The notes beneath the pieces were generated by a model. It was not told the origin of the DNA, did no database searches, and saw only the letters and a program-made list of their open reading frames with translations. From Caecitellus pseudoparvulus (taxonomy: Eukaryota > Protista > Bigyra: Bicosoecida), in NCBI GenBank assembly GCA_965644315.1, contig CBFFRQ010000069.1, positions 310,001-374,000 on the forward strand: a DNA stretch of 64,000 nt. The letters are read 5' to 3'. Positions 38,620-61,600 of this stretch are shown piece after piece (positions within the stretch are counted from its first letter, which is position 1; every line of letters starts with the position of its first letter). The translations under genes and the position numbers were made by a program.

Positions 38620-39108
38620 GGCGTTGCAAGCAGTGCTTATGCTAACGTTTTCAGGACGTTTGCGTGGCCTCCCGCTCTTCAAGTGGCTTGACAACTGGCT
38701 GCACAGTCCCGCCCCGCTGTGCACACAGCTCGGGCGAAGAGTCCGGGGCTATATGGCGTGTCCTGCTGGGGCACTGTTCAAGGGTTTCGACAGAGTGGCA
38801 CCAGTGCCAGTGGTGGGTATCGTTACCCCGTTTTTAGTGCACTGCGAAGTTTGCCCGCCACCTTTGAGTGGCGCGTGGCCCGAGCCCTCCTGCAGGCTCT
38901 TTGCGGTGCTGTGGTGCGCGCTGGGGCACTCCACGCAGTTTGACAAAACAATACTCCTCAGCCGAATATTACACCATGTGAACTTGCTTGGTAGCGAGAG
39001 CCCACCTCCCATTGGTGCAGTGCTGCCAGTGTGGCCAAGGTGCGAGTGGTGGAGGTGCGGTAATTGCATCAAACACCACCCCTCGCCCGTGTGCTGCGAC
39101 TCTCAAAC

Positions 39109-41004: not shown

Positions 41005-44000
41005 TCAGGCCATGTGGTGCTGTGCGGTGCGCCGGGCGGAAGCCAGCACGCTCCGCAGCCGGACAATGTCCTTTCGCGCAGCCTGGCCGTCCACAGCACC
41101 AGCAGTCTCGTAGCTTTCTGTGGAGGCCATGATTGAGTCAATGTGCCGGACCAGCTCGGCGGGAGTCAGCGCTGGGGTGGCTGCCCTGCCTCCCTCCGAG
41201 CTGGCCAGTGGGGAGGTGCCTGAGCCGGAAGAGGCTGTGCCTGCAGAAACCGGGCGGCTGCCCTTGAACAGCACGCGCTCCAAGTCTTTGATGCGCTTGT
41301 CGCGCTCAGTGTTCACGTCGAAGACCTTCATGAGCACCTGCCCGGACAGCGACCCCACCACGGCGCCATCCTTCACAACTGGCAGGCAAAAGGGTGCGCC
41401 GTTGCCCAGGTCGCGGCGAATGCGGTCTTGGGACTTCATGGTGCCCTCGAAGCGACTCAGGGTGTCCTTTTGCATGAGCTTGAAGATCTCTTCTCGTGCC
41501 TCGTCGAACAGCCGCACGTGCTGCAGCAAGCCGCCGGAGTGGCGCATGTGCATCTTGGGCAGCGGCGCAGAGCCAGATGTGCTGCTGCCCTTGCTGTCCT
41601 TGGAGCTGGACTGCATGAAAGGGGCCAGCAGGGACACGGTGGACGTGATGTGGTCCCCCATGTCCACCTCTCCGTCCGCTGACACCGTGACAGCCGTCTC
41701 CTCCTTCTTGCTCACCACCGCGAACATGTGCGCCCACACATCCTCTGCCGACAGCTTGCGGAAGGCAGCCATGCTCTTTTTCAGGCGCGAAAAGTACTTG
41801 CTGGGCAAATTCACCATGCGCTCTGCAGAGTCATCCACGAACTCCGCGTACAGCGCCTCTGCACCCTTCTGGATGCGCGCCACCTCGGCGCGCACGTTGG
41901 ACTGCGCCGCCATCTCGTCCAGTCGCCCCGCAGCCACCGCCTCCACGTCCGTGGCGAGGCGGCTGTTTGTCTTCAGCATATCCTCCAGCCACTCACCTGC
42001 TTGCAGGTAGAAGTCCACGTTCTCGCGACTGCGCTCGCGGTCACAGAACGCCTGGAACGCCTTGCGCATGACCGGGTTGTTCAGCACACCATGCAGGGAC
42101 ACGTCTTCGTAGCCCTTGTCAGGGAACACTGCGATGTGGTACGCATCTCGAAGGGAGAGCTCTGAGTGCCCAACCAGCGCGCCAGATTTCTTGCGCACAG
42201 TCAGGAGGATGTGCTCACTGGCCACGTGGCCGGGGTCAGAGATGACTGGGGACACGTCCGGCACCATGCCTGTGCGCCACTCTGCCACTGTGTAGTTTGT
42301 CCCAGCCAACACGCCAGGTGTGTCTCCTCGAGGTGCATCTTTCAGCAGCCTTCGCGAGCTTCCCTGCTGCAGGGTGAGCCCCGCCGTGCGGTCTCCTTGG
42401 GCTGCTGCTTCAGCCACGGCGGCAGCGTGCTTCACAGTGCCCGTGGACGCAGCACTCTGCAGCATGTGGGAGGAGAGGCTCACGATGAACTCGTCGGACT
42501 TCGAAAACTCCCCCGTCTCACGGCCCACCTGCGATGCCAAAGTGTCCAGGCCGTCCGTGGCCACCAAGAGACTCTTCCGCTTGCCACCCTTGCCGCCTGA
42601 CGAGGCAGCAGCTGCCGCGGCACCAGCATCAGCACTCTTCACTGACCAAGAAGGCACATCCAGCCCCGCGTCGCCCGCTGCAAACTCTGCTGGTGGCAGG
42701 GGCAAGCAGTCAAACCGAAGGTACGGGATGACGATTTTGCAGGACCCGTGGTTGCGCAGCCGGGATGCCGAGTGCAAGTTCAAGAAACCAATTTCCGGTT
42801 GAAGTTCAAACAGAGCCACCACTGGGCGGTGGTCGCACAGCTTGAACTTGAAGTCACATCGATACCGCTTGCACTGCAGCGCGTCGGCACAACCGGGCTT
42901 GGAAGCCCACAGCACGCGATCAGTGTACGATGGGTTCTGATTGCGCTTGTTGATGTACTCGGTGCCACCCTTCTCAAGGCGGTACGACGGTGCAAACGTG
43001 ATGGGGTGCTCGGAGAACGTGCTGTACGCCGCCCCCGTCTCCCGGGCAATGCGCAGTTGGTCCCCCCGGATGACCGGCTCAAGCATGCCACCAGAGACAT
43101 ACTTGACCACCTTGGCGTACTCTTCCTCGCATTCGGCCTTGCCGAGATCCACGCGATAGTTCAAGTTTCCAAGCCAGATAACGTGGTGCCAGTTGTGCAG
43201 GAATTGCGGAGGCGGGGCGCGGGAGCCGGGCACTTGCATGGAGGGGTAGTCGTGGCTGCGCAGCTTCAACTGCTGACAGATCTCGGAGAAGTTGCTGTTG
43301 CGCACAGCCACCTTGTCTGTGCCCGAAGCCAGGTGGCAGTTCACAATGGCGATGTGGGTGTTGTCAGCCCATGTGAGGGCGACCGCGGCGGCACCTTTAT
43401 TGCCCCAAATGCCGCCGACGCCCGTGGCTTCAGTGTCAGTGGCGACGTTCGTGAGGAACTTAGTGATGCTCGCTCGCGCAAACACCAACGTGTGGATCTC
43501 TTGCAGAGTTACAGAGGCGACGACGACGTACTCCTCCGGAGCATATGCGATGGGCCCAGGAAGGGCCAAAGCCGCTGAGATGACACTTCGCCAGGAGTCC
43601 AACTTGGAGCACTCTTGCAACCCGATGACGTAAATGTCACACTCCTGAGGTGGCAGCCAAGTGTGCAGCTGGCTGCTTTCAGCCTCGGACAGCGCCCGCT
43701 CGTGAGAGCAGTTCAGGGTGGCGGTGCAAATGCGCAGCCTGTCTGGAACGTACCCTGCAGCTTCCAGGCCCAGCACCCGCACTGCAGAGAGCTCCACATC
43801 GGCCAGCACCAGGCGAATGAGGCCGGAAAAGCGCTCCCGCAGCGCATGTGTTGCAAACGTCACCTCCACCTCCTCTAGCATGGTGGCTGTGGGTGGGATG
43901 AAGGCTCGTGTGCGCCTGCTCGCGGACTGCCCCGCCCCAGACCCTGCTGCGGCATCCCCCGCGTCATCATATGCAACAATGAAGAGCTTTGTTGGATCGT

Positions 44001-47000
44001 GCAGAGACGACTCCAGGCGCAGGCGGGACCATTCAATGGGGTGCACCACGGCGCCCGTTGCATCGTCAAAAGCTGGTTGCCGGGTCAAAGTACGTGCCTT
44101 GCGGTCCACGATCAGCACCCGGTTGGTTGAGCCCCTGTCCAGCGTAATGGCAAAAGATGCCCGCCCAGACACAGGTTCGTACTTCTCTGCGTCGTCTGAA
44201 AACGGCAAGTCAGGCTCCAGCAAGTGCAGCAACAGGCAAAACTGCTCCCTGGTTTCAGCCGTCGCAAACTTCAACGCGTAGTCTTTGGTTTCTTTGTCAT
44301 GAAAGAGGATGTTTAGTGCCGTGGGCTCAGCTGACACGCGCTCCACTCGGGAGAGGTCCACGACGGGATATGAGTGAGTGTGCGCACCTTTGTCGTCGTA
44401 CACATTCATCTGCTGCCGGTCCATGTCCACTGCCACTGCACGGGGCTGCCACTGCCCGTAGCGATTCAGCTTCTCAACGGGAATGCGGGGTGTACAACCT
44501 GAGGGGAGCTGGGGACCCTTGGAGGTAGGGCTGCCACCGCTCGGCTGGCTGTCCTTCGCTGGAGCCCGCAGGTCGTCCAGCACTGCCCTGAACGCAGGGC
44601 TTGCCTTGAACCGCGCGTACAAGGCAGGTAGCTCCAGGACCGTCATGACCACTGCAACAGCTGCATCCAAGCAGAAGGGGGACAGTTTCATGGTGTCTGG
44701 CGAGGAGGAAGCCAGCCCAGTGAGTCGTGACACTTCCGTCGGGGGCAACAGCAAGCCAATGGCTGTGCCAGGGGACTCGGCAGACCCACAAAACTTGGCC
44801 ACAGTGACGGCAAGCTGCTGTGACAGGCCTCGGGGAACATTGGTGATGACACCACCGTCAGTGGAGACAGAAAACGCCAGCCCCGCAAACTCGTCGGCAG
44901 CTTGCAGAAACTCGCCCACAATCTTGGTGGACACGCTGACGGGCAGCTTCTGCAAGTACTTTCGCTTGTCAGCCTGTTGGATCTTCTTTGCAGAGGCGAA
45001 TGTGGGGTCCCCCGCGCCGGCTTGGCTGGGCAGCAGCTGCCCGCCTGTCGCCTGTGCAACTGCTTGGGGCAGCGGCAGGAACCCCAAGCCGTCTGCCAGG
45101 GCCGAGGCTAGCTGGCGCTTGACGCGAATGGCAGCCCCAACGTGCTGCTCAAACGCATCGCAACCCGCCTCCAGCTTGAGAAGGGCAGCGAGGGGTGGGG
45201 CAGTGCCGTGTGCAAACACTTCAAAGCGCGACAGGCCGAGGGAGTCCCCCGCGAAGGCGTACTCGATGTCTCCCCGAGTGAGCTTCACGATCACTGCAGC
45301 AGTGTCAGTAGTGAACAGCTTGAAAGGTTCGGTGCGCGAAACGGCGCTTGCTCGGGGCAGCAGCGCGTCCACGCCCACTGCCGCGCCCGATGATTTCAAT
45401 TCAACAACTTCGCTGCTGCCGGACTTGGTGGCGCAGGACACGGTGCCTTGCGCAACGACGTAGGCAACCAGTTCGCCGTCCTCAAAGTCTGAAATCACGG
45501 TTCCGCCCCCCACTGACGTGTACTTGATCCGCTTTGTCAGCCGGTTCAGCTGCCCTTCCGTCATGGTGCTGAACAAAGGACTCTTGAGTTTCTGCACCGA
45601 AGACGCTTGCCGGGAGGCAACGTGCGCTTGGATGTTGTCACGCAACACAGGGATGGCTTCCAGCATGGCGTGGAACGCTGAGCGGTGCTGCACCATGACC
45701 AGCGAGTCCCGGCGAGCGACTACAGAAGCGGTGGCTGGCACGTCCTGCAGCAGTCCGATTTCACCGAAGAACCCCCCCGTGGAATCTTGGAACACCTGCC
45801 GCCCACGCACCGTGACGGCATACTCGCCATGAATCATGACGTAGAACGCATCACCGCGTGAGCCCTCAGACACGATGGTGGTCCCGGCCGTGTATGCCAG
45901 CACAGTGAACCTTCGTGCGGCTGACGCAATGTCCTTCTTCGGGATCTCCCGAAAGAAAGGCACCCGTTGGAGGAACAGGGGAAGCAGCTCCTCTGTGTAC
46001 CTTGTGAGCAGCCGGCGCTTCTTTGACACCATCCAAGAATCCCCCAGCTCCCGCACCATGTCTGCCGCGTCCAGCACCAGGGCATGGCAGCCGCCGATGG
46101 AGGCGATGACAGAGCGGGTCACGCTGGTCTCCTCTGTCGGCTCCACTGCAGGCGAGAAGGAAGCAAAAAGTGCAGGCAGGCGACAAAGCAGTGCCAGAAC
46201 GTGCAGCTGGCCAGGACGCTGCGACTCACAAGGTGCGTCTTCGAAGGTTGGGTCGTCATACGCGACGCCAGTTGTGGGGACAATGTAACACCCCGGAGCA
46301 AGCAGAGCATCTACACAGTGAGTTGTCCCAGGCTGCGGGGTTTTGGCGAGGAAGGGCCAACGTGAGCGCGAGGCATGCAGTGCCGTGCGGTGCTTGCGCT
46401 CAGTAGGCGTGGGGTGCCGCGCCTCCATCTCACCTCACAGTGCTGCACACAGATCTCCTCATCGGCCCCTGGATCAACCTTAAACAATGCTGTCACGCCA
46501 GCACACAAGATGAACATGCACTGCTCATAGTTTCCCTGCAAGCGCGAGGGCGTGACACAGTGGGGAGAGGGGGTGTCGCGGCGACCGCGTTGCAGTGTGG
46601 TCAACTGCAAACCTTCGCCAGGGGCAGGCGTGCCCACCGCACAGTAAAGGTCTGTAGGCCACAGCACGCACCTCTTCGAACATTTTTGACTCCGGTGTCA
46701 GCGTCTTCAGCTTGAAGTGCTTTGCAAGCGCGGTGGCTTCATCAGGCGTCATGTCGGCCAGCAAAGGCACGGCGCTCCGCAGGAACTTGTGAGTGAGGTA
46801 TTGCTTTGCATACTTGCTGCGCAGTTCTTCTTTTGCCCGACTTAGCAAGTCATCGCTTGGTGCTTCGTACACGGACCCACTGCGCCCAGCTTGTGCGACA
46901 CCAGGTGCCAGGCCGAGAGCAGCCAGCTCATCTTCGTCCACGCCAGCTGGTGTCTCCCACGACGATGCCTGCGTCAGCCCATGAAACCAGTACCAATTGC

Positions 47001-47121
47001 CGGACTCATCGTCGAATGCTTGCTGCCAATTGGGGTCGCTCCAAGAAGCCTGACCCGACTGCTCATTGAACCAGTAGGTCTTGCCTGACTCTGGGTCCAC
47101 GCCTTCGCTCCAGTCTGCCAT
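41005..47121 (-). CDS. Multidomain signalling protein: WW-WW, cNMP-binding domains, PH-like, inositol polyphosphate 5-phosphatase, C2-like, RGS; spliced at the 5' end
   Basis: WW: WSEGVDPESGKTYWFN...SW, twice. cNMP: IVSEGSRGDAFYV...FFGEIGLL...ATASV. 5-phosphatase: IGLQE, GNKGA, VNCHL, WLGNLNYR, PSYTDRVLW, DHRPV. RGS: FQAFCDRERSRENVDFY...VNLP...FDEAREEIFKLMQKDTLSRF. Confidence 0.88.
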
Positions 47122-47296
47122 GGCGGGGCTGATGTCGCAGCGACCCCGTGCACCAAGCGCCAGCAAGTGGACGCTGAGCGGGCCTTCCTTCAGCTGCACT
47201 GCGAATTGCAGAGTACTAGGAGTTCGGGCAGCTCTGCGGCAGTGAATGCGATGGCTGCATTGTGTGGCACACGCTCAAATGCTCGGCGCAGGCAGT

Positions 47297-49069
47297 TTAC
47301 GCAGCCTCCTCTGTTGGGATGGAGTACTTGATGTTCGTGTTCACCGCCAGCACGTGCTCATCAATCACGATGGCCGGGTCAATGAAGCTCAATCCACCCA
47401 GAGACGGCAGTGGGAAGCCCAGCCCACCCAGCCCGTTCAACAGGCTCTTCGCTGTGGGCAGCACCAGGTCCACCAGTGTCTGGATGAAGCCAACACTCAG
47501 CTCGCCAATGGAGCTGCGCAGCACCTTCAAGTTCAAGTCCAACGCCGTCACGTGGAACTTCAACACGGGCGCCACCTGCCCAGTCGCGTTGGAGTGCTGC
47601 ATGGACAGGCTGACACTGAGGCCCGCCACCATGTCAGCGCCCAGCGTGAAGACAGGCAAGCTGCCGCCATACGAGGACACACCACGCAGGGAGCCACTGG
47701 CGCCGGCCAGCACACCAAAGTCAAGCGCCACAGGCAGGTGTGCCTGCAGGCCGCTGGCCTTGCTGGCCGTGATGCTGGGCGTCGTGGACTTGTCGAAGGT
47801 GACGTTCAGGCTCATGGCACGGTTGGGGTACTTGGCGGGCAGCTGGGGCAGGCCCAAGTCTGCCCACTTGCTCGTGTTCAGAGGCAGGGGGAACAGGCGC
47901 GGCTTGTTGGCGGGCGTGTAGAAGCTGTCCAATGCACCGTTGGTGTAGGCAGTCCACAGGGCACAGGACAGTGTAGCGGGGGACAGCTGCGCCTGCAGCA
48001 TGTAGTGCTCGGGTGCCACGATGGGGGGCATGGGCAGGGTGGCGATGGGGCACTTGGCATGGCGCAGGGCGTCAGTGGCGGCGAGGTCGAAGGCCAGGAC
48101 GGCGGTGGCAGCGGAGCCGGCACCCTGCACGCCCAGGACATCGGTGGCCAGGGAGAAATCCGTGACGGACAATCCACCGCCAAGGTGCATGTATGAGGGC
48201 AGCTTCGACAGCACTTTTGCAGCTGCATCGTTCACAGCGGTCTGCACTTTGCCTCGGACGGCCTTCTCGATGGCGTCCTTCAAAATGCCCTTGAGCAGGT
48301 CAACCAAGATGTTGTACAGCCAAGAAGCGTCGCCGTGGAACTTGATATCGAAGTGGCCGAAAGACAAGTTGGCGCCTGTACAGTCAACATGAGGCTTGGC
48401 AGCATCGACGCTGATTTCCACGGTAACGCTAGCAGTAGTGTCACCCGGGCTGATATCAATAGATCCAGTGGATGAGATGTGCGGCCAGTGGTTCTTGCGC
48501 CAGTGGTAGTCCATCGTAATCTCTGCGACGTGCGGGATGTGCCGTGGGGTTGATGCTCCCGAGCCCCACACCTGAGGACTCACTCGCCGAGTCCAGTCCG
48601 TTAATGCCACCAGCAACGGTTGACGGCGCAGCCAGGGTCAGGTCAATGTCATTGATAACAAGGCCAGAAGCCTGCGGCAAAGAAAACAACCAGCGATCGA
48701 TGAGCGGCTCGCGTCTCAGAAGGTGTGACTGCACTCACGCGGATGTTGGTCAGCTCCAGAGTCACATGGCCAATAGGAGTGTCCAGGTCGGGCTGGGTGA
48801 TGGATGGGATAGTCTGTGGCAGCGCAAGACGGCTTGAAGTGAAACATTCTGGGTCCTGGGGTACAGTGTGTTGGTCAGGTGCACTGCACTTGGCAGCAAC
48901 GCACGCTGAACTGGGCGAGGATCGCGTTCAGCTCAGGCAGCACAGCGTTCTTAAACTCCACAAGCCCCCCCTCCGACACACCCGTCGCGAAGCCGTACGC
49001 CGCCCTCCCCGATTGCAAGCAGCATGCAGCTGCAGCTGCAGCCAGCAGCACTGCACTTGCCCCTCGCAT
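47297..49069 (-). CDS. BPI/LBP (TULIP)-family secreted lipid-binding protein, copy A (4 exons)
   Basis: Signal peptide MRGASAVLLAAAAA; VSEGGLVEFK; TIPSI...TPIGHVTLELTNIR; DIKFHGDASWLYNILVDLLKGILK; C-terminal GFPLP. Confidence 0.85.
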
Positions 49070-50322
49070 GGTGAGCGCGGTGCAAAGTGCGCGGGCACGT
49101 GTGGTTCAAAAACCACGCCACGAATGGACTGCCGGTTCAAGTGGTTGTTCAATGTTGAGGAAGCGAGTGTGTGAGACGGTGCGTGTTTGAGCACGGCAGC
49201 GAAGTGCGCCAGAGCAGCATGTCGCAGCGTGGCCTGGCTGGGGCGTCATCGTGGGAGAGCCGGGAGGCACGGTGGATGCAGCGGCGTCGGGCGCAGTTGG
49301 GTCTGGGTGAGTGCAGCATTGGTGAGTGGTGGTGTAGTGGCATGCATGGCTCACGAGCCTCTCCTTGCTGCGCGGTTCAGGGGGTGGAGATCAGGCCAGG
49401 CAAAGCAGGTGAGTGCGGTTGGGCGTTGTTTTCCGCACCACGCCGTGATTGGCGTGTGGCCCGGCCAGGCGCAGCATTGCCTTGGGGCTGGAGCACAAGC
49501 TTCCACCGTGTCTATGTGCAGGTCTGGGATGACTGGCACGGGTGTGTCTCGCGGGTCTCCGATGAAGACGTCCCGTGCTGTGAGTGGTTTGGTGCCCGGT
49601 GCCGTTGGAGGTGAGCCAGCGATGGCCAGCTCACCTGGCGGGAGCACGGTGATGTCTGCGTCTGAGCTGCGCGGCATGCGGCGTCGTGCGGGGGGGAGGA
49701 GCAGTGGCCGGGGCAAGTACCGCATGGAGCTGGAGGGTGGTGGTGTGGGTGGCGGTGGTGCGCGGGGCCCCAGTCAGGGACATGTGCGGAGTGCCACGGC
49801 ACCGAGTGCGGGCAGGTGGGAGCAGGGCGGTGAGCGGGGCTTCTTCGACTACTTCTTCAACCCCCGCCCAGGCGGCGGGACGCCCATGCGTGACGGGCGT
49901 GGGAACGTCGTGGCAGACTTGCGTGGGGCACTGTCTGTGCAAGGCGGTGTGGAGCGTGAGGGTGAGCAGCCGCAAGGAGTGAGCGTTCACGAGCTGGAAG
50001 GCGCTGCCGCTGCCAGTGTTGCAGGCGGTGGTGGTGGTGCTGAGGCTGGTGGGGGGCTGGGGGTTGGTGTGGGCGGGGCGGCCCGTGTGGCTGATGGGAG
50101 TGTGGGTGCCATGCCAGGTGGTGCAGGGCAGTCCATGGGTGACATGGTGCATGCCCGCACGATTGAGCGACTGCAGCGGGAGGCCGATGATGCAGATCGG
50201 GGGCGGCGAGAGGCTGAGGAGGAGTTGCGGAGTGTGCGTGCTCAGTTGTCAACTGCGATCAGTTTGTTGGAGGAGTACCGCGCCGAGTACGGCCCACTGC
50301 CGGCGAAGTAGGGCGGCGGGGA
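48907..50322. repeat. ~1.4-kb duplicated block, copy 1 (BPI exon 1, divergent intergenic region, neighbour gene)
   Basis: Near-identical to 56110-57525 at a constant offset of 7203 bp. Confidence 0.95.
49622..50311 (+). CDS. Hypothetical Gly-rich protein with C-terminal coiled coil, copy 1
   Basis: MASSPGG...FFDYFFNPRPGGGTPMRDGRGNVV...IERLQREADD...LEEYRAEYGPLPAK; ORF intact in both copies. Confidence 0.7.
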   Translation: MASSPGGSTVMSASELRGMRRRAGGRSSGRGKYRMELEGGGVGGGGARGPSQGHVRSATAPSAGRWEQGGERGFFDYFFNPRPGGGTPMRDGRGNVVADLRGALSVQGGVEREGEQPQGVSVHELEGAAAASVAGGGGGAEAGGGLGVGVGGAARVADGSVGAMPGGAGQSMGDMVHARTIERLQREADDADRGRREAEEELRSVRAQLSTAISLLEEYRAEYGPLPAK

Positions 50323-50392
50323 TAGTGGGGAATGGAAGTTCCCTTTTATGTCAAGCACTGTAATAGATGGGGCCGCATGAATTTTCAAATCC

Positions 50393-52276
50393 TTAGAAAG
50401 AGATGGTGATGTTCGTGTTCACCGCCAGCACGTGCTCGTTTATCACGATAGCCGGATTCTGGAAAGCCATGCCCCCCAGAGACGGCAGTGGGAAGCCCAG
50501 CCCACCCAGCCCGTTCAACAGGCTCTTCGCTGTGGGCAGCACCAGGTCCACCAGTGTCTGGATGAAGCCAACACTCAGCTCGCCAATGGAGCTGCGCAGC
50601 ACCTTCAAGTTCAAGTCCAACGCCGTCACGTGGAACTTCAACACGGGCGCCACCTGCCCAGTCGCGTTGGAGTGCTGCATGGACAGGCTGACACTGAGGC
50701 CCGCCACCATGTCAGCGCCCAGCGTGAAGACAGGCAAGCTGCCGCCATACGAGGACACACCACGCAGGGAGCCACTGGCGCCGGCCAGCACACCAAAGTC
50801 AAGCGCCACAGGCAGGTGTGCCTGCAGGCCGCTGGCCTTGCTGGCCGTGATGCTGGGCGTCGTGGACTTGTCGAAGGTGACGTTCAGGCTCATGGCACGG
50901 TTGGGGTACTTGGCGGGCAGCTGGGGCAGGCCCAAGTCTGCCCACTTGCTCGTGTTCAGAGGCAGGGGGAACAGGCGCGGCTTGTTGGCGGGCGTGTAGA
51001 AGCTGTCCAATGCACCGTTGGTGTAGGCAGTCCACAGGGCACAGGACAGTGTGGCGGGGGACAGCTGCGCCTGCAGCATGTAGTGCTCGGGTGCCACGAT
51101 GGGGGGCATGGGCAGGGTGGCGATGGGGCACTTGGCATGGCGCAGGGCGTCAGTGGCGGCGAGGTCGAAGGCCAGGACGGCGGTGGCAGCGGAGCCGGCA
51201 CCCTGCACACCCAGGACATCGGTGGCCAGGGAGAAGTCAGTGCGTGATGCCCCACCGCCAAGGTGCATGTGCGAGGGCAGCTTTGCGAAGACCTTCGCTG
51301 TGGCGGCGTTCACAGCGGTTTGCACTTTGCCTCGGACAGCCTTCTCGATGGACTTGCGCAGGGTGCCCTTGAGCAGGCCAGTGACGATGTTGAGCAGCCA
51401 CGACAGGGAGCCGTGGAACTTGATCTTGAACTTGTCAAATGACACGTTCACCCCTGAGCACGAGGCGTGTGGCTTGCCACCCGACGCGCTGATGGCGACG
51501 GTGACGCCAGCGGTGGTTGTGCCGGGGGTGATGTCGATGGAACCGTGCATCTTGATATGGGGCCAGTGGCTCTTTCGAGCATGGTAGTCCATCGAAATCT
51601 CTGCGGAGTAGGCGTTGGCATGAGCTTGACTGCCGTTGACTGCAGCCTGGACGCCTCCCCTCCTGGACACCAGAGCCGGTGGCGAAGTACGAAGCAGCGC
51701 ACGTACTGGCATTGTGCAAGCCTGCGATAGACCCCCCCACAGTGCCAGGGGCAGTCATGACGAGGTTCGCATTGTCGATGTGCAGCCCGCTAGCCTGTGG
51801 ACATGGGCACCAGTGGACCGCGTGGGGTAGGCAGGGGGGACGGGCACTGTTGCTGGCTGGGTGGTGTCAGGTCAAGTGCAGTGCGGCAGTTCACTTGCAC
51901 GCACCCTGATGTTTGAAAGCGTGAGGTCGACGTGTCCAATGGGTGTCTTGACATGCTCTTTGATGTCAGGGATGGTCTGCACGCCGAGTGGGCCGTGTCA
52001 GTGCGAGAGTGCGCCCGGAAGCAAGGATCAATGCGGGCGGGAGCGGGGTGCCCCGGCGCACGCCCCAGCGCGGTGCCGGAGTGTGCCGGCACGTTGGCGA
52101 CGTACGGCAAACTGGGCCAGCGCTGCGTTCAGCTCTGGTAGCACTGCATTCTTAAAGGAGTCAAGGCCTGCCTTGGACACGCCGGTGGCGAAGCCGTAGT
52201 TGGCAGCAGCGACGGGCTGAAGCAGGAGAGCAGCAGCAGCTGCGGTGGCCACGAGGGCCAATGAGACAACTCGCAT
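50393..52276 (-). CDS. BPI/LBP-family protein, copy B (4 exons)
   Basis: MRVVSLALV leader; exons TIPDIKEHVKTPIGHVDLTLSNIR, ASGLHIDNANLV and KISMDYHARKSHWPHIKMHG; same intron positions as copy A. Confidence 0.85.
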
Positions 52277-52485
52277 TGTGGTGCTGAGTATGATATTGAG
52301 ATGAAGAGAAACCGTTTGTGATCCGTTGTGTGTTTTCTCGTTTCGGTGAGATTGAACTGTGTCCTGAGGTCTCAGCACGGAACAGCTCGGAACCTTGATC
52401 GGTGATATGTTCAATAATGAGAGTCGGGACAAACCATACCTAAGTAAGCCATGCATTCTACCTACGTATACCACATCAATGAGCA

Positions 52486-54369
52486 TCACAGGGTGATGGT
52501 GATGTTCGTGTTCACCGCCAGCACGTGCTCGTTTATCACGATGGCTGGGTTCTGGAAAGCCATGCCCCCCAGAGACGGCAGTGGGAAGCCCAGCCCACCC
52601 AGCCCGTTCAACAGGCTCTTCGCTGTGGGCAGCACCAGGTCCACCAGTGTCTGGATGAAGCCAACACTCAGCTCGCCAATGGAGCTGCGCAGCACCTTCA
52701 AGTTCAAGTCCAACGCCGTCACGTGGAACTTCAACACGGGCGCCACCTGCCCAGTCGCGTTGGAGTGCTGCATGGACAGGCTGACACTGAGGCCCGCCAC
52801 CATGTCAGCGCCCAGCGTGAAGACAGGCAAGCTGCCGCCATACGAGGACACACCACGCAGGGAGCCACTGGCGCCGGCCAGCACACCAAAGTCAAGCGCC
52901 ACAGGCAGGTGTGCCTGCAGGCCGCTGGCCTTGCTGGCCGTGATGCTGGGCGTCGTGGACTTGTCGAAGGTGACGTTCAGGCTCATGGCGCGGTTGGGGT
53001 ACTTGGCGGGCAGCTGGGGCAGGCCCAAGTCTGCCCACTTGCTCGTGTTCAGGGGCAGGGGGAACAGGCGCGGCTTGTTGGCGGGCGTGTAGAAGCTGTC
53101 CAATGCACCGTTGGTGTAGGCAGTCCACAGGGCACAGGACAGTGTGGCGGGGGACAGCTGCGCCTGCAGCATGTAGTGCTCGGGTGCCACGATGGGGGGC
53201 ATGGGCAGGGTGGCGATGGGGCACTTGGCATGGCGCAGGGCGTCAGTGGCGGCGAGGTCGAAGGCCAGGACGGCGGTGGCAGCGGAGCCGGCACCCTGCA
53301 CGCCCAGGACATCGGTGGCCAGGGAATAGTCGGTACCAGACAGACCATTACCAAGGTGCATGTGCGAGGGCAGCTTTGCGAAGACCTTCGCTGTGGCGGC
53401 GTTCACAGCGGTTTGCACTTTGCCTTGGACAGCCTTCTCGATGGACTTGCGCAGGGTGCCCTTGAGCAGGCCAGTGACGATGTTGAGCAGCCACGACAGG
53501 GAGCCGTGGAACTTGATCTTGAACTTGTCAAATGACACGTTCACCCCTGAGCACGAGGCGTGTGGCTTGCCGCCCGACGCGCTGATGGTGACGGTGACGC
53601 CAGCGGTGGTTGTGCCGGGGGTGATGTCGATGGAACCATGAAGCTTCGTGTGAGGCCAGTGACTGCGTCTGACATGGTAGTCCATCGAAATCTCTGCGGA
53701 GGAGGCGTTGGCATGAGCTTGACTGCCGTTGACTGCAGCCTGGGCGCCTCCCCTCCTGGACACCAGAGCCGGTGGCGAAGTACGAAGCAGCGCACGTACT
53801 GGCATTGTGCAAGCCTGCGATGGACCCCCCCACAGTGCCAGGGGCAGTCATGACGAGGTTCGCATTGTCGATGTGCAGCCCGCTAGCCTGTGGACATGGG
53901 CACCAGTGGACCGCGTGAGGTGAGCAGGGGGGACGGGCACTGTTGCTGGCTGGGTGGTGTCAGGTCAAGTGCAGTGCGGCAGTTCACTTGCACGCACCCT
54001 GATGTTTGAAAGCGTGAGGTCGACGTGTCCAATGGGTGTCTTGACATGCTCTTTGATGTCAGGGATGGTCTGCGCGCCGAGTGGGCCGTGTCAGTGCGAG
54101 AGTGCGCCCGGAAGCAAGGATCAATGCGGGCGGGAGCGGGGTGCCCCGGCGCACGCCCCAGCGCGGTGCCGGAGTGTGCCGGCACGTTGGCGACGTACGG
54201 CAAACTGGGCCAGCGCTGCGTTCAGCTCTGGTAGCACTGCATTCTTGAAGGAGTCAAGGCCTGCCTTGGACACGCCGGTGGCGAAGCCGTAGTTGGCAGC
54301 AGCGACGGGCTGAAGCAGGAGAGCAGCAGCAGCTGCGGTGGCCACGAAGGCCAAGGAGACAACTCGCAT
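52486..54369 (-). CDS. BPI/LBP-family protein, copy C (4 exons)
   Basis: Tandem duplicate of copy B at offset 2093, introns included; MRVVSLAFV leader. Confidence 0.85.
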
Positions 54370-54512
54370 GTCTGACAGCAAGGTACACAAAGCAGTGGTA
54401 TGGTTTAAATGCAGTATGCAATCGCAAGGAAGTGAGGCACATGCAGAATTAATGATTTGTAAAATCGAGTGCATTGGTCTGGCAAGCCACGTGTGTACAA
54501 TGGCTTTCACCA

Positions 54513-56272
54513 CTACAGGGTGATGGTGATGTTCGTGTTCACCGCCAGCACGTGCTCATCAATCACGATGGCCGGGTTCTGGAATGCCATGCCCCCCAGA
54601 GACGGCAGTGGGAAGCCCAGCCCACCCAGCCCGTTCAACAGGCTCTTCGCAGTGGGCAGCACCAGGTCCACCAGTGTCTGGATGAAGCCAACACTCAGCT
54701 CGCCAATGGAGCTGCGCAGCACCTTCAAGTTCAAGTCCAACGCCGTCACGTGGAACTTCAACACGGGCGCCACCTGCCCAGTCGCGTTGGAGTGCTGCAT
54801 GGACAGGCTGACACTGAGGCCCGCCACCATGTCAGCGCCCAGCGTGAAGACAGGCAAGCTGCCGCCATACGAGGACACACCACGCAGGGAGCCACTGGCG
54901 CCGGCCAGCACACCAAAGTCAAGCGCCACAGGCAGGTGTGCCTGCAGGCCGCTGGCCTTGCTGGCCGTGATGCTGGGCGTCGTGGACTTGTCGAAGGTGA
55001 CGTTCAGGCTCATGGCACGGTTGGGGTACTTGGCGGGCAGCTGGGGCAGGCCCAAGTCTGCCCACTTGCTCGTGTTCAGAGGCAGGGGGAACAGGCGCGG
55101 CTTGTTGGCGGGCGTGTAGAAGCTGTCCAATGCACCGTTGGTGTAGGCAGTCCACAGGGCACAGGACAGTGTGGCGGGGGACAGCTGCGCCTGCAGCATG
55201 TAGTGCTCGGGTGCCACGATGGGGGGCATGGGCAGGGTGGCGATGGGGCACTTGGCATGGCGCAGGGCGTCAGTGGCGGCGAGGTCGAAGGCCAGGACGG
55301 CGGTGGCAGCGGAGCCGGCACCCTGCACACCCAGGACATCGGTGGCCAGGGAGAAGTCGGTGCGCAGACAGCCCCACCGCCAAGGTGCATGTGCGAGGGC
55401 AGCTTTGCGAAGACCTTCGCTGTGGCGGCGTTCACAGCGGTTTGCACTTTGCCTCGGACAGCCTTCTCGATGGACTTGCGCAGGGTGCCCTTGAGCAGGC
55501 CAGTGACGATGTTGAGCAGCCACGACAGGGAGCCGTGGAACTTGATCTTGAACTTGTCAAATGACACGTTCACCCCTGAGCACGAGGCGTGTGGCTTGCC
55601 ACCCGACGCGCTGATGGCGACGGTGACGCCAGCGGTGGTTGTGCCGGGGGTGATGTCGATGGAACCGTGCAGTGAGGTGTGGGGCCAGTGGCGACGTCGG
55701 ACATGGTAGTCCAAGCTTACAGCTGCGAGCGGTGAAGCTTGACTGCCTGAGAAAGATCCGCGGTCCAAGGAGTGGGGACATTTACTCACTGGTATGCTCC
55801 AGTCCGTGGATCCCACCACCGACTGTGCTGGGCGCCGTCATGACGAGGTCCGCTCCACTGATGACGAGGCCAGTTGCCTGCGGAGAAGGGAACAGAGTGC
55901 AGATTCCTTCATGCGCAGGCCAGGAGGGAGCCACAATGCAGGCATCAGCAGCTCAGCACACCTTGATGTTGGTAAGACTGATATCGACATGCCCGATTGG
56001 CGTCCCGACATCGTTAATAGTCATGTCCGGAATACTCTGCGAGGTGTGCAAGCGTGAAACGTAGGCATAACGACGGCGCATGTTCGCGAAGTGAGCTGGG
56101 CGCTTACAGTGAACTGGGCGAGGATCGCGTTCAGCTCAGGCAGCACAGCGTTCTTAAACTCCACAAGCCCCCCCTCCGATACACCCGTCGCGAAGCCGTA
56201 CGCCGCCCTCCCCGATTGCAAGCAGCATGCAGCTGCAGCTGCAGCCAGCAGCACTGCACTTGCCCCTCGCAT
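54513..56272 (-). CDS. BPI/LBP-family protein, copy D; apparent +2 frameshift near 55359-55375 (assembly error or pseudogene)
   Basis: Exon 1 as in copy A; unique exons 2-3; exon 4 like copy B. The frame breaks at HLGGG|...TDFS (17 nt where the paralogs have 15). Confidence 0.75.
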
Positions 56273-57525
56273 GGTGAGCGCGGTGCAAAGTGCGCGGGCA
56301 CGTGTGGTTCAAAAACCACGCCACGAATGGACTGCCGGTTCAAGCAGCTGTTCAATGTTGAGGAAGCGAGTGTGTGAGACGGTGCGTGTTTGAGCACGGC
56401 AACGAAGTGCGCCAGAGCAGCATGTCGCAGCGTGGCCTGGCTGGAGCGTCATCGTGGGAGAGCCGGGAGGCACGGTGGATGCAGCGGCGTCGGGCGCAGT
56501 TGGGCCTGGGTGAGTGCAGCATTGGTGAGTGGTGGTGTAGTGGCATGCATGGCTCATGGGCCTCTCCTTGCTGCGCGGTTCAGGGGGTGGAGATCAGGCC
56601 AGGCAAAGCAGGTGAGTGCGGTTGGGCGTTGTTTTCCGCACCACGCCGTGATTGGCGTGTGGCCCGGCCAGGCGCAGCATTGCCTTGGGGCTGGAGCACA
56701 AGCTTCCACCGTGTCTGTGTGCAGGTCTGGGATGACTGGCACGGGTGTGTCTCGCGGGTCTCCGATGAAGACGTCCCGTGCTGTGAGTGGTTTGGTGCCC
56801 GGTGCCGTTGGAGGTGAGCCAGCGATGGCCAGCTCACCTGGTGGGAGCACGGTGATGTCTGCGTCTGAGCTGCGCGGCATGCGGCATCGTGCGGGGGGGA
56901 GGAGCAGTGGCCGGGGCAAGTACCGCATGGAGCTGGAGGGTGGTGGTGTGGGTGGCAGTGGTGCGCGGGGCCCCAGTCAGGTACATGTGCGGAGTGCCAC
57001 GGCACCAAGTGCGGGCAGGTGGGAGCAGGGCGGTGAGCGGGGCTTCTTCGACTACTTCTTCAACCCCCGCCCAGGCGGCGGGACGCCCATGCGTGACGGG
57101 CGTGGGAACGTCGTGGCAGACTTGCGTGGGGCACTGTCTGTGCAAGGCGGTGTGGAGCGTGAGGATGAGCAGCCGCAAGGAGTGAGCGTTCACGAGCTGG
57201 AAGGCGCTGCCGCTGCCAGTGTTGCAGGCGGTGGTGGTGGTGCTGAGGCTGGTGGGGGGCTGGGGGTTGGTGTGGGCGGGGCGGCCCGTGTGGCTGATGG
57301 GAGTGTGGGTGCCATGCCAGGTGGTGCAGGGCAGTCCATGGGTGACATGGTGCATGCCCGCACGATTGAGCGACTGCAGCGGGAGGCCGACGATGCAGAT
57401 CGGGGGCGGCGTGAGGCTGAGGAGGAGTTGCGGAGTGTGCGTGCTCAGTTGTCAACTGCGATCAGTTTGTTGGAGGAGTATCGCGCCGAGTACGGCCCTC
57501 TGCCGGCGAAGTAGGGCGGCGGGGA
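56110..57525. repeat. ~1.4-kb duplicated block, copy 2
   Basis: Near-identical to 48907-50322. Confidence 0.95.
56825..57514 (+). CDS. Hypothetical Gly-rich/coiled-coil protein, copy 2
   Basis: Differs from copy 1 by only a few substitutions. Confidence 0.7.
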   Translation: MASSPGGSTVMSASELRGMRHRAGGRSSGRGKYRMELEGGGVGGSGARGPSQVHVRSATAPSAGRWEQGGERGFFDYFFNPRPGGGTPMRDGRGNVVADLRGALSVQGGVEREDEQPQGVSVHELEGAAAASVAGGGGGAEAGGGLGVGVGGAARVADGSVGAMPGGAGQSMGDMVHARTIERLQREADDADRGRREAEEELRSVRAQLSTAISLLEEYRAEYGPLPAK

Positions 57526-57532
57526 CACTTTC

Positions 57533-58524
57533 CTACAAGTCAAGCCTCTCAACTGTTACAGTGTGCTGGCCACCTTTTGGACTGGTTGTCCTTCCCTGCT
57601 GGTTGTTGTCCCTTGCTTCTCTTTGCCGCTTTCGACGTGGCGGAGGGCTTGGTTGCTCTGGGCGGGAAGGGCTTTGGCAGGCCACGACTGACGCTAGCAA
57701 GCTGGTGGCTGGAGTTGTGCCTGATTTCGCTTCCTGCTGCTCCCATTTTGTGGTGTCCCTTATTGCGTGTGTGTTTGCCGCTTTTTGCTGAGCGCGGAGC
57801 TTGGCTCTTGCCTCCCGAAGGCGCTGCTTGAGTGCCAGCTTTTTCTCTTCATACTCTGTGATTTGGACATCCAGGGCCCTCCGCTGGGTCTGATGAGTTT
57901 GCACAGCTGCCAGTGCAAGCTTCAAGCGTGAGACGTGGCTAGCTGCTGATGCCTGAGTTTTTTTCAATCTGTTGTGCAGGCTCTCTGCGCTGCTAGCCAT
58001 GGTTTGAAGCTTCAAGCTCAGATTTTCCTTGGCACACTCGAGCTTTTGTGCCATGGCTTGCTTTTTCTGAGCAGAGCTCAATGCTTGCTCAATGCACTGC
58101 CACACCTCGACTGGGCCGCGCTGGTTGCGTTGGCCTGCCCGCGCTGGTGACGCCGATGGCTGCTCCTTGTACTGACTGGCTTTCGTGCCACGCCGCAGGC
58201 ACTTTTCTATCCAGGTCAACACAGCAAGAGTTTGGCTTCTGATTTTGCGGCTCCCATCTTTCTCTGCGTTGCAGGCGCCGTTGCCGGTTGGCATGGCACG
58301 CTGCGTTTCGTTGCAAGCGTAGACATACGGTCTGCTGCACGGGAGCGCCACAGCAGAAGCTGCTTCATGTGCAAGTTGGTACTTTGGTGCAATCGGTGGC
58401 TTTCAGCCTGAATGCTGTGTGTCTCTTGGATGACCTGCTCCACCCGGCGCGTTGTCTCCGTGATGCGCCTGTCAAGCTGCTCCACCTGCTGCTGCGCAAG
58501 CACCACCGCTTCAAGCAAACTCAT
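57533..58524 (-). CDS. Hypothetical coiled-coil protein, probably spliced
   Basis: MSLLEAVVLAQQQVEQLDRRITE... and IEQALSSAQKKQAMAQKLE...LKQRLREARAKL, heptad-like segments in two frames. Confidence 0.6.
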
Positions 58525-58630: not shown

Positions 58631-61600
58631 CTACCCTGGCTGGAGGAGGGAGCCTCGCCGACCAGTCGTAGCTTGCCGAAGCAGCCTAGAAAATGATGCC
58701 ATGCCTTCAGCTGGTGTTGTTGATGGCTGGTGAGGAAGAGGTGTCGTGTGGGTGCTCATGGGGCGCGTGCAAGTGCCGGGAAACCTGCCGTCTACGGCAG
58801 AGTGCATGTTCCGCCCCTCCCACCAGCCCGAGCTGTCTTTGTCCCAAACCCACACGACATCGCCGACATCCAGGTCAACTTCATCGTCTCTGGAAGCACT
58901 GAAGTGTGTCACTGCACGCACGTATTCCCCGAGTGCCTTGCTTTGCACTCCGTGCTGAGCCGGGGTGTCATCAGAGCTGCCGGAGCGTGTGAGAGCCAGG
59001 TTCCACGCAGACTCTCCGAGGGCTAAGAGAGCAGACCGCATGCTGTCTGTCGTTTGTAACGAATACGAGTAGCTCGGTGCTGCGCCTGGGGTTCGAGCTG
59101 CGATATCGTTCAAAACCCCCCTTGCCTCAGTGGACAAGGAGGCAGGCTCGAGTGCTCCATGCTCCACGCTGAAGCTGCGGGGGCTGTCCCCACTTGTGGC
59201 TGTCGACGTTGTGGGGTGAGCTGACATTTGCTCAAAGGGATCGGAGCTGCACTGTGTCTTTCCATTGACCAGCCTCTGCCACTGGCCCGCAGGTGGCACC
59301 CATGACCAGCATTCTCCAAGGGCTCCGGTGAGCCCTGGAGCTGCGATGTGGAATCCAGGGTGCGACAGCACCGCTGATGGAACCCACCCAACCTTGTCGA
59401 CCGCATGTGTGCGATCAAGTACCAAAGTCCATGTTAAGTGAAGAGGTCGCTGTGTCCAGTCACCCTTGGTGACCGGCTTTCCGCAAGGGGCGTCAAAAGC
59501 AACAAGAATTCTATCACGCACATGCAGGGGAAGGTCGGAAAGCTTGCTCCAACGTGCAGGCAGTCCGGTTTGGCTCTGGTCAAGCGAAGGCAGCAAGCCC
59601 ACAAGCTCTGACATGGGGATGGTCGCCGGCTGATGGAGGCGCACCATGCTCCACCCTACGCCATCCTGGCGAAGGACTGAAACGATGTCCCCTGGGACAA
59701 CGTGCAGCTCTGTTGGCGATCGCGCAAAGTACGGCCGTTGCACACTGACACTCTCACAACCAGGGGCACTCCAAATGGTTGTGCTTGCAGCTGAAGCAGG
59801 GGTAAACAAGCCCGCCTCACCCAGAGGCACGCCGTCGGAGGATGTGGGGGACGCCACGGTAGTGTCCCTCGCTCCAGGGTATGCCAGGCGCTCGGGAGAC
59901 TGAAGGCGGCTTGGAGGCGAGATGCTTAGGTCTGGGTTGCCCGCTTCCAGAATGGGAGTCGGCTGAGCAGACGAGAGCGAGGACAATGTGCTGCAAGCGG
60001 CGCTGTGAGTCACGAGGTGCCCCTCTGTCAACAAGCGGCCATCCAAGGCGTTTGTGGCAAGGTTGTGGGCGCTGGACCCGAAGGCGAGTTGGACTGCGCC
60101 ATCGACAGGGTTTGAAGTGGACACTGTCAGCGCAAAGAACTGCGGGGGTCTCTTGAAGGTGGGCACGCGTGGTTGGGGAGGAGCGTACGATGGCCCGCCG
60201 ATGACTTTGCTAGCTTGTCGTGCAGCTTGGATGATGGCTGTGGAACGAAGAACGTCTTTGACACCTCGTCTGTGTAGTGTTGACAGGTCGTACCAGGGGT
60301 CCAGCAATGCGCGAGAGGAAGGGGAGAGCAAGTTCTTCGTGCTGTGTGGCTTGCCGACCGCCACGGTACGCCGACGAACGCGTGTGGTTATGGAAGGCCA
60401 GGGTCTTCCTGAAACAAACGGTTTGGACTCGTCGCTCAGCAAAGATGATCTCTTGTTGGGCCCTGATGAGAGTTTGGAGTGAGAAAAAGTCACCATTGAG
60501 TGCTTTCTGCGAGAGTGACGTGGCGAACCAGCGACAGGTAGGGCTATATCGCTGCTTGAGTCACGAATGTTGGGGAAGAGGTGCCCCACCTGGAGGGCCT
60601 GCGAAGGAGGAGAGGGGGAGGGGGGGGCAGTGGGCAACTGTGGTGCGTTTGAGGGGTGTGTGGCGTGTACTCGGCGGTGCCCCTGAAAGCAGGCTGTGAA
60701 TCGGCGCCACCAAGAAGTGGGCTGAGACGCACCTCTTGGCTGGGTCCCCGTCCCTGAGCGCCGTGCTTTCAGTGGTGTCAGTTTTGCTGCTGAGGGTCGA
60801 GTAGCTTGCTGCAAGCCTGTCGCTAGCATGGGGCTCGTGGAAGCGGGCTCAGTGCCAGGTCGTGCATGAGACTGGAGGGTATCACGGCCGGGCGGTCCAA
60901 CAAATCCTCGAGAGCCGGTGGAATAGTCAGAATCATCACTGTCTTCTTCGGCCAACGTGGTGACATCGCTGCTTGGTGCACGGCCTCCCTTCGAAGGCGG
61001 CGCATCTGGCACTGCACGGGTTGCCAGGCGCTGCATGAATGCCCGCTGCTCTCGCGTCCTGCCTTGGTCATCCTTGGCACTGGCTCGCAAGATGGCTTGC
61101 TGTTCTTCAAATTCTTTGTTCCAAGCCTTGTTTCGGTCAAGCTGGGGGTCAAAGGCATCCCACCCGCCACGCTTAGCCGCCAAAGCGACACGGTAGGCAC
61201 CCTCCTCCGTTTCATATTCAGTTCCTTGTGCAGCCGAAACCATTGTGTGCATGGCTTCCTGCATGCCATCACCGTCAACCACTTCTTCATCTACAGAGTC
61301 CAAGAGGGCCGACAGGCCGGCCATGTCGAGGGAGATGCTCAAGCCAGTTCCCTGCAGGGCAGCCCAGTCCTCTTTTGACAAGGAACCCTCCGCAAGGTCC
61401 ACGTGCGACCCATGCGTCGTGCTTGTTGGCGGCGACTCCATGTGCACACTCGCAGTGGGCGACTTTTGCAGGCCATTCTTCGTGTCAAACGCAGAGGCGC
61501 CCGAGTGGGCGGAGACAGGAGCCCGGGGTGGGCTGTCCCCTTGCCCGCCAAGAATTGTCACGGCCCGCAAGAAGGCACGCGCCTTGGATGTCCCTGCAGA

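Follow-up and report, generated by a model that had tools for sequence, protein, structure and literature searches.

How do four neighbouring genes come to be almost identical over one block, silent sites included, and strongly diverged on either side of it? This question is raised by a tandem gene array in a 64,000-nt stretch of Caecitellus pseudoparvulus DNA (contig CBFFRQ010000069.1, positions 310,001 to 374,000; hereafter the window, in whose coordinates all positions are given). In a self-comparison of 44-60 kb we found four direct repeats on the minus strand, carrying genes that we named A, B, C and D and that encode proteins of the BPI/LBP/CETP family. A 758-nt core in the last exon is 99.5-99.9% identical among the copies, and the sequence comparisons support gene conversion as the cause of this identical C-terminal block. 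Two short islands that escaped homogenisation interrupt the identity of the copies upstream of the core, and the putative lipid-binding N-terminal halves differ strongly in charge.

All four genes have the same architecture of four exons and three introns. Gene A spans 47297-49069 (exons 49069-48905, 48813-48739, 48671-48584 and 48522-47297, the last including the stop codon; defined by alignment and splice motifs), gene B 50393-52276 (exons 52276-52106, 51976-51905, 51794-51707 and 51600-50393), gene C 52486-54369 (exons 54369-54199, 54069-53998, 53887-53800 and 53693-52486) and gene D 54513-56272 (exons 56272-56108, 56036-55962, 55877-55790 and 55722-54513). The introns are bounded by GT..AG in 12 of 12 cases, measure 61-129 nt and lie at homologous positions in phases 0, 0 and 1, which bears out the identical intron positions claimed in a preliminary description of this DNA. 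The predicted proteins of A and B have 517 and 512 amino acids, respectively. The exon 1 product starts with Met-Arg, followed by 15-18 Ala/Leu/Val-rich residues, small residues and then YGF, and we read this hydrophobic leader as a putative signal peptide. No C-terminal hydrophobic tail was found in the exon-4 products. Evidence from sequencing reads was taken from Logan contigs of three DNA runs (X1, X5 and X8) and one RNA run (X16). In a contig of the latter, a marine metatranscriptome, introns 1 and 2 of D are precisely spliced out (56037-56107 and 55878-55961), with RNA joints at 56036>56108 and 55876>55961.

The core lies at 47397-48154 in A, 50475-51232 in B, 52568-53325 in C and 54595-55352 in D, all on the minus strand, and corresponds to columns 370-1127 of the four-way exon-4 alignment. 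Among the four copies 5 of its 758 columns vary, with 2-4 differences per pair (two between A and B). Outside the core, A and B differ at 110 sites in the 370 nt on its 5' side and at 41 sites in the last 100 nt, and the divergence flanking the core in A is about 30% on the 5' side and about 40% on the 3' side. The preliminary description had put the near-identical block at about 830 bp; the block is real and the coordinates given for it match (a span of about 770 bp), but its length is about 760 nt. By the Nei-Gojobori method, the proportion of synonymous differences (pS) in the core is 0.01-0.02 and that of nonsynonymous differences (pN) is 0.00, as against pS values of 0.53-0.80 in the 5' part of exon 4 and 0.55-0.87 in exons 1-3. 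The near-identity thus includes synonymous sites, as had been claimed. At a pS of 0.53, the binomial probability of four or fewer synonymous differences in about 205 silent sites is 7e-60. For the A-B core tract, this binomial on silent sites was used instead of a Sawyer-type permutation of variable sites; the permutation gave p = 0.14 for this pair, since the core has almost no variable sites and the tract is invisible to such a test. For A-D, B-C, B-D and C-D, the permutation detected long concordant runs (p <= 1e-4). The GC content at third codon positions (GC3) is 0.85-0.87 in the core versus 0.68 in the unconverted N-terminal part of A, a contrast weakly compatible with long-running GC-biased conversion. 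The tract shows identity at silent sites, and old sequence with saturated synonymous divergence flanks it on either side; because of these boundaries the sequence data support gene conversion as its cause. The homogenising process proposed in the preliminary description is thereby supported.

We then investigated the protein family. PF02886 (LBP_BPI_CETP_C) is found in exon 4 of all four genes at 49.9-52.6 bits (A 52.6, B 49.9), above the gathering cut-off of 23, and a whole-genome scan agrees. On exon 4 alone, PF01273 aligns over profile positions of about 88-157, its last third, and scores 21-28.5 bits where the cut-off is 28.8. By themselves, exons 1-3 are too short to score and had no Pfam match; their peptides are colinear with the N-termini of full-length homologues that pass PF01273. 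An exhaustive protein search of a representative library returned 522 relatives, most of them 470-510 aa long and 25-35% identical, and a narrower homologue search gave three relatives at about 50% identity; all six full-length homologues that we checked carry both PF01273 and PF02886. Among solved structures, phmmer matched mouse LBP (4M4D) at 2e-09 and human BPI at 2e-04. An AlphaFold2 model of B exon 4 (401 aa; the roughly 110 residues of exons 1-3 lie outside the model) has a predicted local distance difference test score (pLDDT) of 86.5 and a predicted template modelling score (pTM) of 0.78, and its two-barrel boomerang fold has the long helices and the central sheet of the family. With this model, Foldseek returned BPI (1EWF) as the best match, with an E value of 8e-21 and a TMq of 0.72; LBP (4M4D) followed at 3.6e-18, and CETP (2OBD) was the fifth-best structural match at 1.6e-12. 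These profile and model results support the assignment of A-D to the BPI/LBP/CETP family with a TULIP fold. Both the BPI/LBP-like call, by the PF02886 scores of 50-53 bits and the phmmer matches, and the fold suggested with it, by the Pfam and AlphaFold checks on exon 4, were borne out. The phmmer alignment places exon-4 residue 13 at BPI residue 96 and residue 386 at BPI residue 442. On this scale, codons 124-376, which make up the core, fall on BPI residues of about 208-431, a stretch that takes in the entire C-terminal barrel together with some of the central sheet.

The core is one tract among several. From start to stop codon, B and C show about 99% identity, introns included (97-100%), with the exception of the two islands, and their 5' spacers (about 209 and 143 bp) are unrelated and unalignable. 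D equals B and C over exon 4 from alignment column 60 on, and over the 5' third of exon 4 these three copies are identical except in the islands. A and D share exon 1 and about 1.25 kb upstream of it as a block that is 98.6% identical by self-BLAST (48907-50322 and 56110-57525, minus strand). Homogenised sequence is thus present in non-coding DNA too, in the introns of B and C and in the upstream block of A and D. Exons 2-3 of D and their introns have no likeness to any other copy, and A is diverged throughout, save in the core, in exon 1 and in the block upstream of it. As previously described, exons 2-3 and the introns are strongly diverged among A, B/C and D; the introns cannot be aligned. 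A variable N-terminus joined to a constant C-terminus had also been proposed; the core shared by all four copies is consistent with this, but B equals C throughout, A and D share exon 1 and the sequence upstream, and the layout is a mosaic of several tracts and not a clean variable-N/constant-C design. The A/D upstream block was also considered as a mobile element or a hidden gene, and both were rejected: it exists in two copies in the whole genome and no more, Pfam, Rfam and tRNA searches gave no match, and it has no coding-like GC3 pattern.

Two islands of the minus strand differ in all four copies. Island 1 lies at 51541-51582 in B, 48463-48504 in A, 53634-53675 in C and 55663-55704 in D; island 2 lies at 51233-51257 in B, 48155-48179 in A, 53326-53350 in C and 55353-55379 in D, and adjoins the 5' edge of the core. 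The differences between B and C cluster there, at 14 of 35 nt (51579-51545) and 13 of 25 nt (51257-51233), against about 1.2% elsewhere (P about 1e-18 per island). Silent sites are saturated within the islands (pS 0.43-0.86 overall, 0.43-0.80 in island 1 and 0.43-0.77 between B and C), whereas pS is 0.00-0.01 between them among B, C and D. Because their silent sites are saturated like those of old sequence, the islands are, as read from the alignments, old sequence that escaped homogenisation and not recent mutations. We found no other donor for them in the genome, which contains these four genes and a fifth BPI-family gene on contig 32 (G000:C32:153738-154910, a match within a 505-aa open frame). 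The latter is only 26% identical to A-D and lies on another contig, and it cannot be a donor.

Both islands encode loops. The product of island 1 in B is HARKSHWPHIKMH, a His/Arg/Lys-rich β-hairpin at exon-4 residues 6-18, and the island 1 residues include 2-3 Arg/Lys and 3-4 His. In the phmmer alignment to 1EWF and 4M4D it corresponds to BPI residues of about 88-100, and in the AlphaFold model it includes the loop (residues 9-15) that joins strands 2-8 and 16-25. The region of BPI most implicated in the binding of lipopolysaccharide (LPS) is 86-102 (PMC4620459), and a polycationic hairpin at this N-terminal tip is found in the array by alignment correspondence alone. Island 2 corresponds to exon-4 residues 113-122, immediately after the long helix of the N barrel, where the model has a loop at residues 114-119.

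In D, island 2 also contains a frameshift. Exon 4 of D is 1210 nt long, compared with 1208 nt in B and C; the two extra bases lie within island 2 (55353-55379) and shift the frame, and the N-terminal frame after this +2 shift reaches a stop at 55076. Among the matches listed in the reads there is no indel at 55353-55379, and the listed contigs break at or near both edges of island 2. Either D broke recently and is still transcribed, or the shift is an assembly error. A frame-restoring mini-intron was considered and rejected. The sole GT..AG candidate, 47 nt by hand count, has a poor donor and falls below the length of all introns in the array, and its removal would cost about 15 conserved codons. 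Separately, in run X8, whose label names an organism other than that of X1, the D-specific stretch 55550-55949 (exon 3 of D, introns 2-3 and the start of exon 4) is matched by no contig at 99% likeness, but its flanks are. This stretch may differ or be absent in the X8 strain.

The N halves are unlike in charge. Counted exon by exon without the leader, the net charge of this half is -9 for A, +10 for B, +8 for C and +5 for D, so that the copies lie up to 19 charge units apart; every N half contains 8-12 His. Cationic BPI and near-neutral LBP are likewise a charge-differing pair (PMC4620459). The charge differences and the conversion-resistant islands, one of which is at the position of the LPS-binding hairpin, favour the view that the N barrels are functionally differentiated. 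The preliminary description had gone further and proposed a diversified repertoire. The differences in charge and in the islands agree with this, but the term is overstated for three N-terminal types, one of them frameshifted, in a mosaic that related species do not repeat. As a suggestion only, acid pH would add charge to the basic, His-rich hairpin.

The genome comprises 30.6 Mb in 215 contigs, and the window has about 63% GC and short GC-rich introns. LHC and PsbO gave no match in the genome, and the stretch is present in marine metagenome, seawater and metatranscriptome runs, all of which points to a marine non-photosynthetic eukaryote. For such an organism an antibacterial or prey-related role of A-D is plausible by analogy. 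The closest functional precedent for prey handling is BpiC of Dictyostelium discoideum, a BPI-family protein that this bacterivorous protist needs to kill Gram-negative bacteria quickly after ingesting them (PMC8545105); BpiC knockout cells kill ingested K. pneumoniae and E. coli more slowly (PMC8545105; PMC10107278). The comparison with BpiC is by function alone, and, unlike for A-D, no conversion-homogenised array is reported for it (PMC8545105, PMC10107278). A literature search on BPI in marine heterotrophic flagellates found no report mentioning BPI.

A related marine eukaryote, represented by two contigs from the JGI and ENA metagenomes (L003 1-7745 and L001 1-2385, 99.96% identical in their overlap; GC 55%), has three clustered BPI-like paralogs, g1-g3. 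They show about 46-50% amino-acid identity to A-D and have introns 1 and 2 at the same exon boundaries, and a 102-nt patch at 95% identity links two of the paralogs, indicating some conversion. In contrast to the array, two of these paralogs are in tandem on one strand and the third is head-to-head with them, and the equivalent of exon 4 is interrupted at extra points, likely by further introns. A-D are closer to one another than to any of g1-g3; the identities between the two sets are 45-65%, with only hints of individual correspondence from the tails and the hairpin. The comparison of the two lineages indicates that the clustering is old and that the constant C half is specific to the source lineage.

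Our preferred reading, to which we assign a probability of about 0.75, is that A-D are anciently diverged tandem BPI/LBP/CETP paralogs that were overwritten piecewise by gene conversion, that their N-barrel differences were held by selection, and that the proteins act on bacterial lipids. On this reading, each gene encodes a protein with two lipid-binding barrels and a leader that we read as a signal peptide. Non-reciprocal recombination has homogenised the 758-nt tract, comprising part of the central sheet and the entire C barrel, in all four copies; further tracts have made B and C alike over their entire transcribed unit, B, C and D alike over exon 4, and A and D alike over exon 1 and its upstream sequence. 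Conversion has spared the two islands, exons 2-3 of D, roughly the last 30 codons and, in A, most of the N barrel. Selection against the loss of functional differences may maintain the contrast between the anionic N barrel of A and the cationic ones of B, C and D, as well as the diversity of the hairpin, and the C barrel, if it does a common job, may tolerate homogenisation. Like BpiC, the proteins would then work on lipids of the bacterial outer membrane, in the secretory or food-vacuole lumen of a marine protist that feeds on bacteria. Several observations weigh against this reading. The cores of the L003 paralogs are 58-84% identical in amino-acid sequence and their N parts 56-69%, so that a design with a constant C half is not conserved. 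The N-terminal types number only three (A, B/C and D), and D is frameshifted; spliced RNA was seen for D alone among the four copies, at low depth. By the phmmer alignment, the mammalian disulfide Cys135-Cys175 is not conserved, with B having Val at Cys135 and Arg at Cys175 (the lone Cys in the N part of B aligns to BPI Cys132). Finally, the islands could persist without selection.

This last point leads to the most serious alternative, a neutral history in which the C barrel was covered by chance in a few conversions of ordinary length, the islands and the other unconverted parts are simply not yet overwritten, and there is no selected layout of variable and constant parts. We consider such a history possible, though not the probable one. 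The tracts do vary in extent and also take in introns, N-terminal regions and 1.25 kb of non-coding sequence upstream; no constant C half is present in the related species, and pN/pS is below 1 in the variable parts, with no sign of positive selection. On the other hand, in B, C and D the islands of 25-42 nt are 30-50% diverged between blocks that are 99-100% identical, and therefore a neutral history needs coinciding tract ends in several independent events. That one island falls on the homologue of the LPS-binding hairpin, and that the N halves are so far apart in charge, also fit a neutral history poorly. A different objection concerns the ligand: A-D may be general TULIP proteins that transfer or bind lipids in the lumen, for example membrane or storage lipids, with no specific antibacterial role. 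This fold carries many lipids, CETP is among the best structural matches, the N-domain disulfide of mammalian LBP and BPI is missing, and the N barrel of A is anionic. We nevertheless regard a general lipid role as rather unlikely, given that BPI and LBP, not CETP, lead both the structural and the sequence matches, that the N halves of B, C and D are cationic with a His-rich basic hairpin at the site that corresponds to the LPS-binding tip, and that BpiC provides a protist precedent.

Two further explanations deny that the identity of the core arose by conversion at all. Identical cores could be an artefact of assembly or polishing, produced by consensus collapse or cross-polishing of paralogs; repeats of about 800 nt are indeed hard for short reads, and the read evidence is itself made of Logan contigs. 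The contigs nevertheless make an artefact very improbable. In X1 the core is on one 802-nt contig at a word depth of 300, the B/C-shared and A/D-shared contigs are at about 151-153 and the copy-specific pieces among those listed at about 49-73. Word depth is not a copy number, but the resulting ratio of about 4:2:2:1 for core, B/C-shared, A/D-shared and unique sequence matches the assembled copy numbers, and the ratios in X8 are similar. The core is also on one 826-nt contig in X5, a marine metagenome, and on a single long contig in X8, and in all three runs the core contig extends into the A-type 3' flank. Moreover, polishing is unable to turn a divergence of about 30% into identity. The other explanation is a recent tandem duplication followed by fast adaptive divergence of the N halves, in which case the near-identity of the core would reflect the true young age of the copies. 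Core identity and the tandem arrangement fit such a history, but synonymous sites are saturated in exons 1-3 and in the 5' part of exon 4, the introns of 61-129 nt are unalignable, and the last 100 nt of the coding sequence of A are about 40% diverged. Positive selection cannot yield silent and intronic divergence, and we consider recent duplication ruled out, with hardly any probability left to it.

The preferred reading of old paralogs partly overwritten by conversion can be compared with known systems. Partial concerted evolution with 'islands of divergence' is familiar from models of duplicated genes under conversion and from RHD/RHCE and the red and green opsins. As in these, A-D show near-identity over tracts that include silent sites and introns, sharp boundaries and short peaks of old divergence; they differ in having four copies and several nested tracts, one of which matches a structural domain (the C barrel), and selection on the islands is inferred. 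With human BPI (PDB 1EWF, 1BP1) and mouse LBP (4M4D), the putative products share the C-terminal Pfam domain, the two-barrel boomerang, the hydrophobic leader, a basic hairpin at the position of BPI ~88-100 and paralogs strongly unlike in charge (PMC4620459). The identity in the structural alignment is 19-20%, however, and A-D differ further by the absence of the Cys135-Cys175 disulfide, by a His-rich hairpin with a conserved WPH motif and by C-terminal halves of paralogs that appear to be kept nucleotide-identical by conversion. Both the protein family and the evolutionary process are already known, and the array is an unusually clean case rather than a new principle. BPI and LBP are central to the sensing and killing of Gram-negative bacteria in animals, and the array, in a marine bacterivore-like protist, is a compact natural experiment in which the same C barrel is combined with anionic and cationic N barrels and with two islands resistant to homogenisation. 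The islands point to specific residues for ligand specificity, and the array is a clear example of the interplay of selection and conversion in a small gene family. A more ambitious idea, which we regard as doubtful, is a 'variable recognition, constant effector' system of a unicellular predator. Conversion would keep a common C barrel docking to a common partner or membrane, selection would separate the N barrels of opposite charge and the two islands that set the lipids bound, and the His-rich hairpins would be switched on in the acid food vacuole.

Other features of the window were also noted. GC skew is strongly positive (0.12-0.20) over 48000-58000, which covers the whole array, and is about 0 in most of the window. 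A small open reading frame (ORF) on the minus strand (46525-47199), immediately 3' of gene A, contains two WW domains. Just past it is an uninterrupted 1807-aa ORF (41005-46428, minus strand) that combines cyclic-nucleotide-binding, PH-like, Exo_endo_phos2 (PF22669) phosphatase and RGS domains, an unusual signalling architecture. Two more long ORFs of the minus strand are intron-free, one of 1911 aa encoding a ubiquitin hydrolase with EF-hand and DUSP domains (32989-38724) and one of 1755 aa encoding a protein kinase with a C-terminal SH3 domain (58631-63898). The genome looks intron-poor outside the BPI genes.

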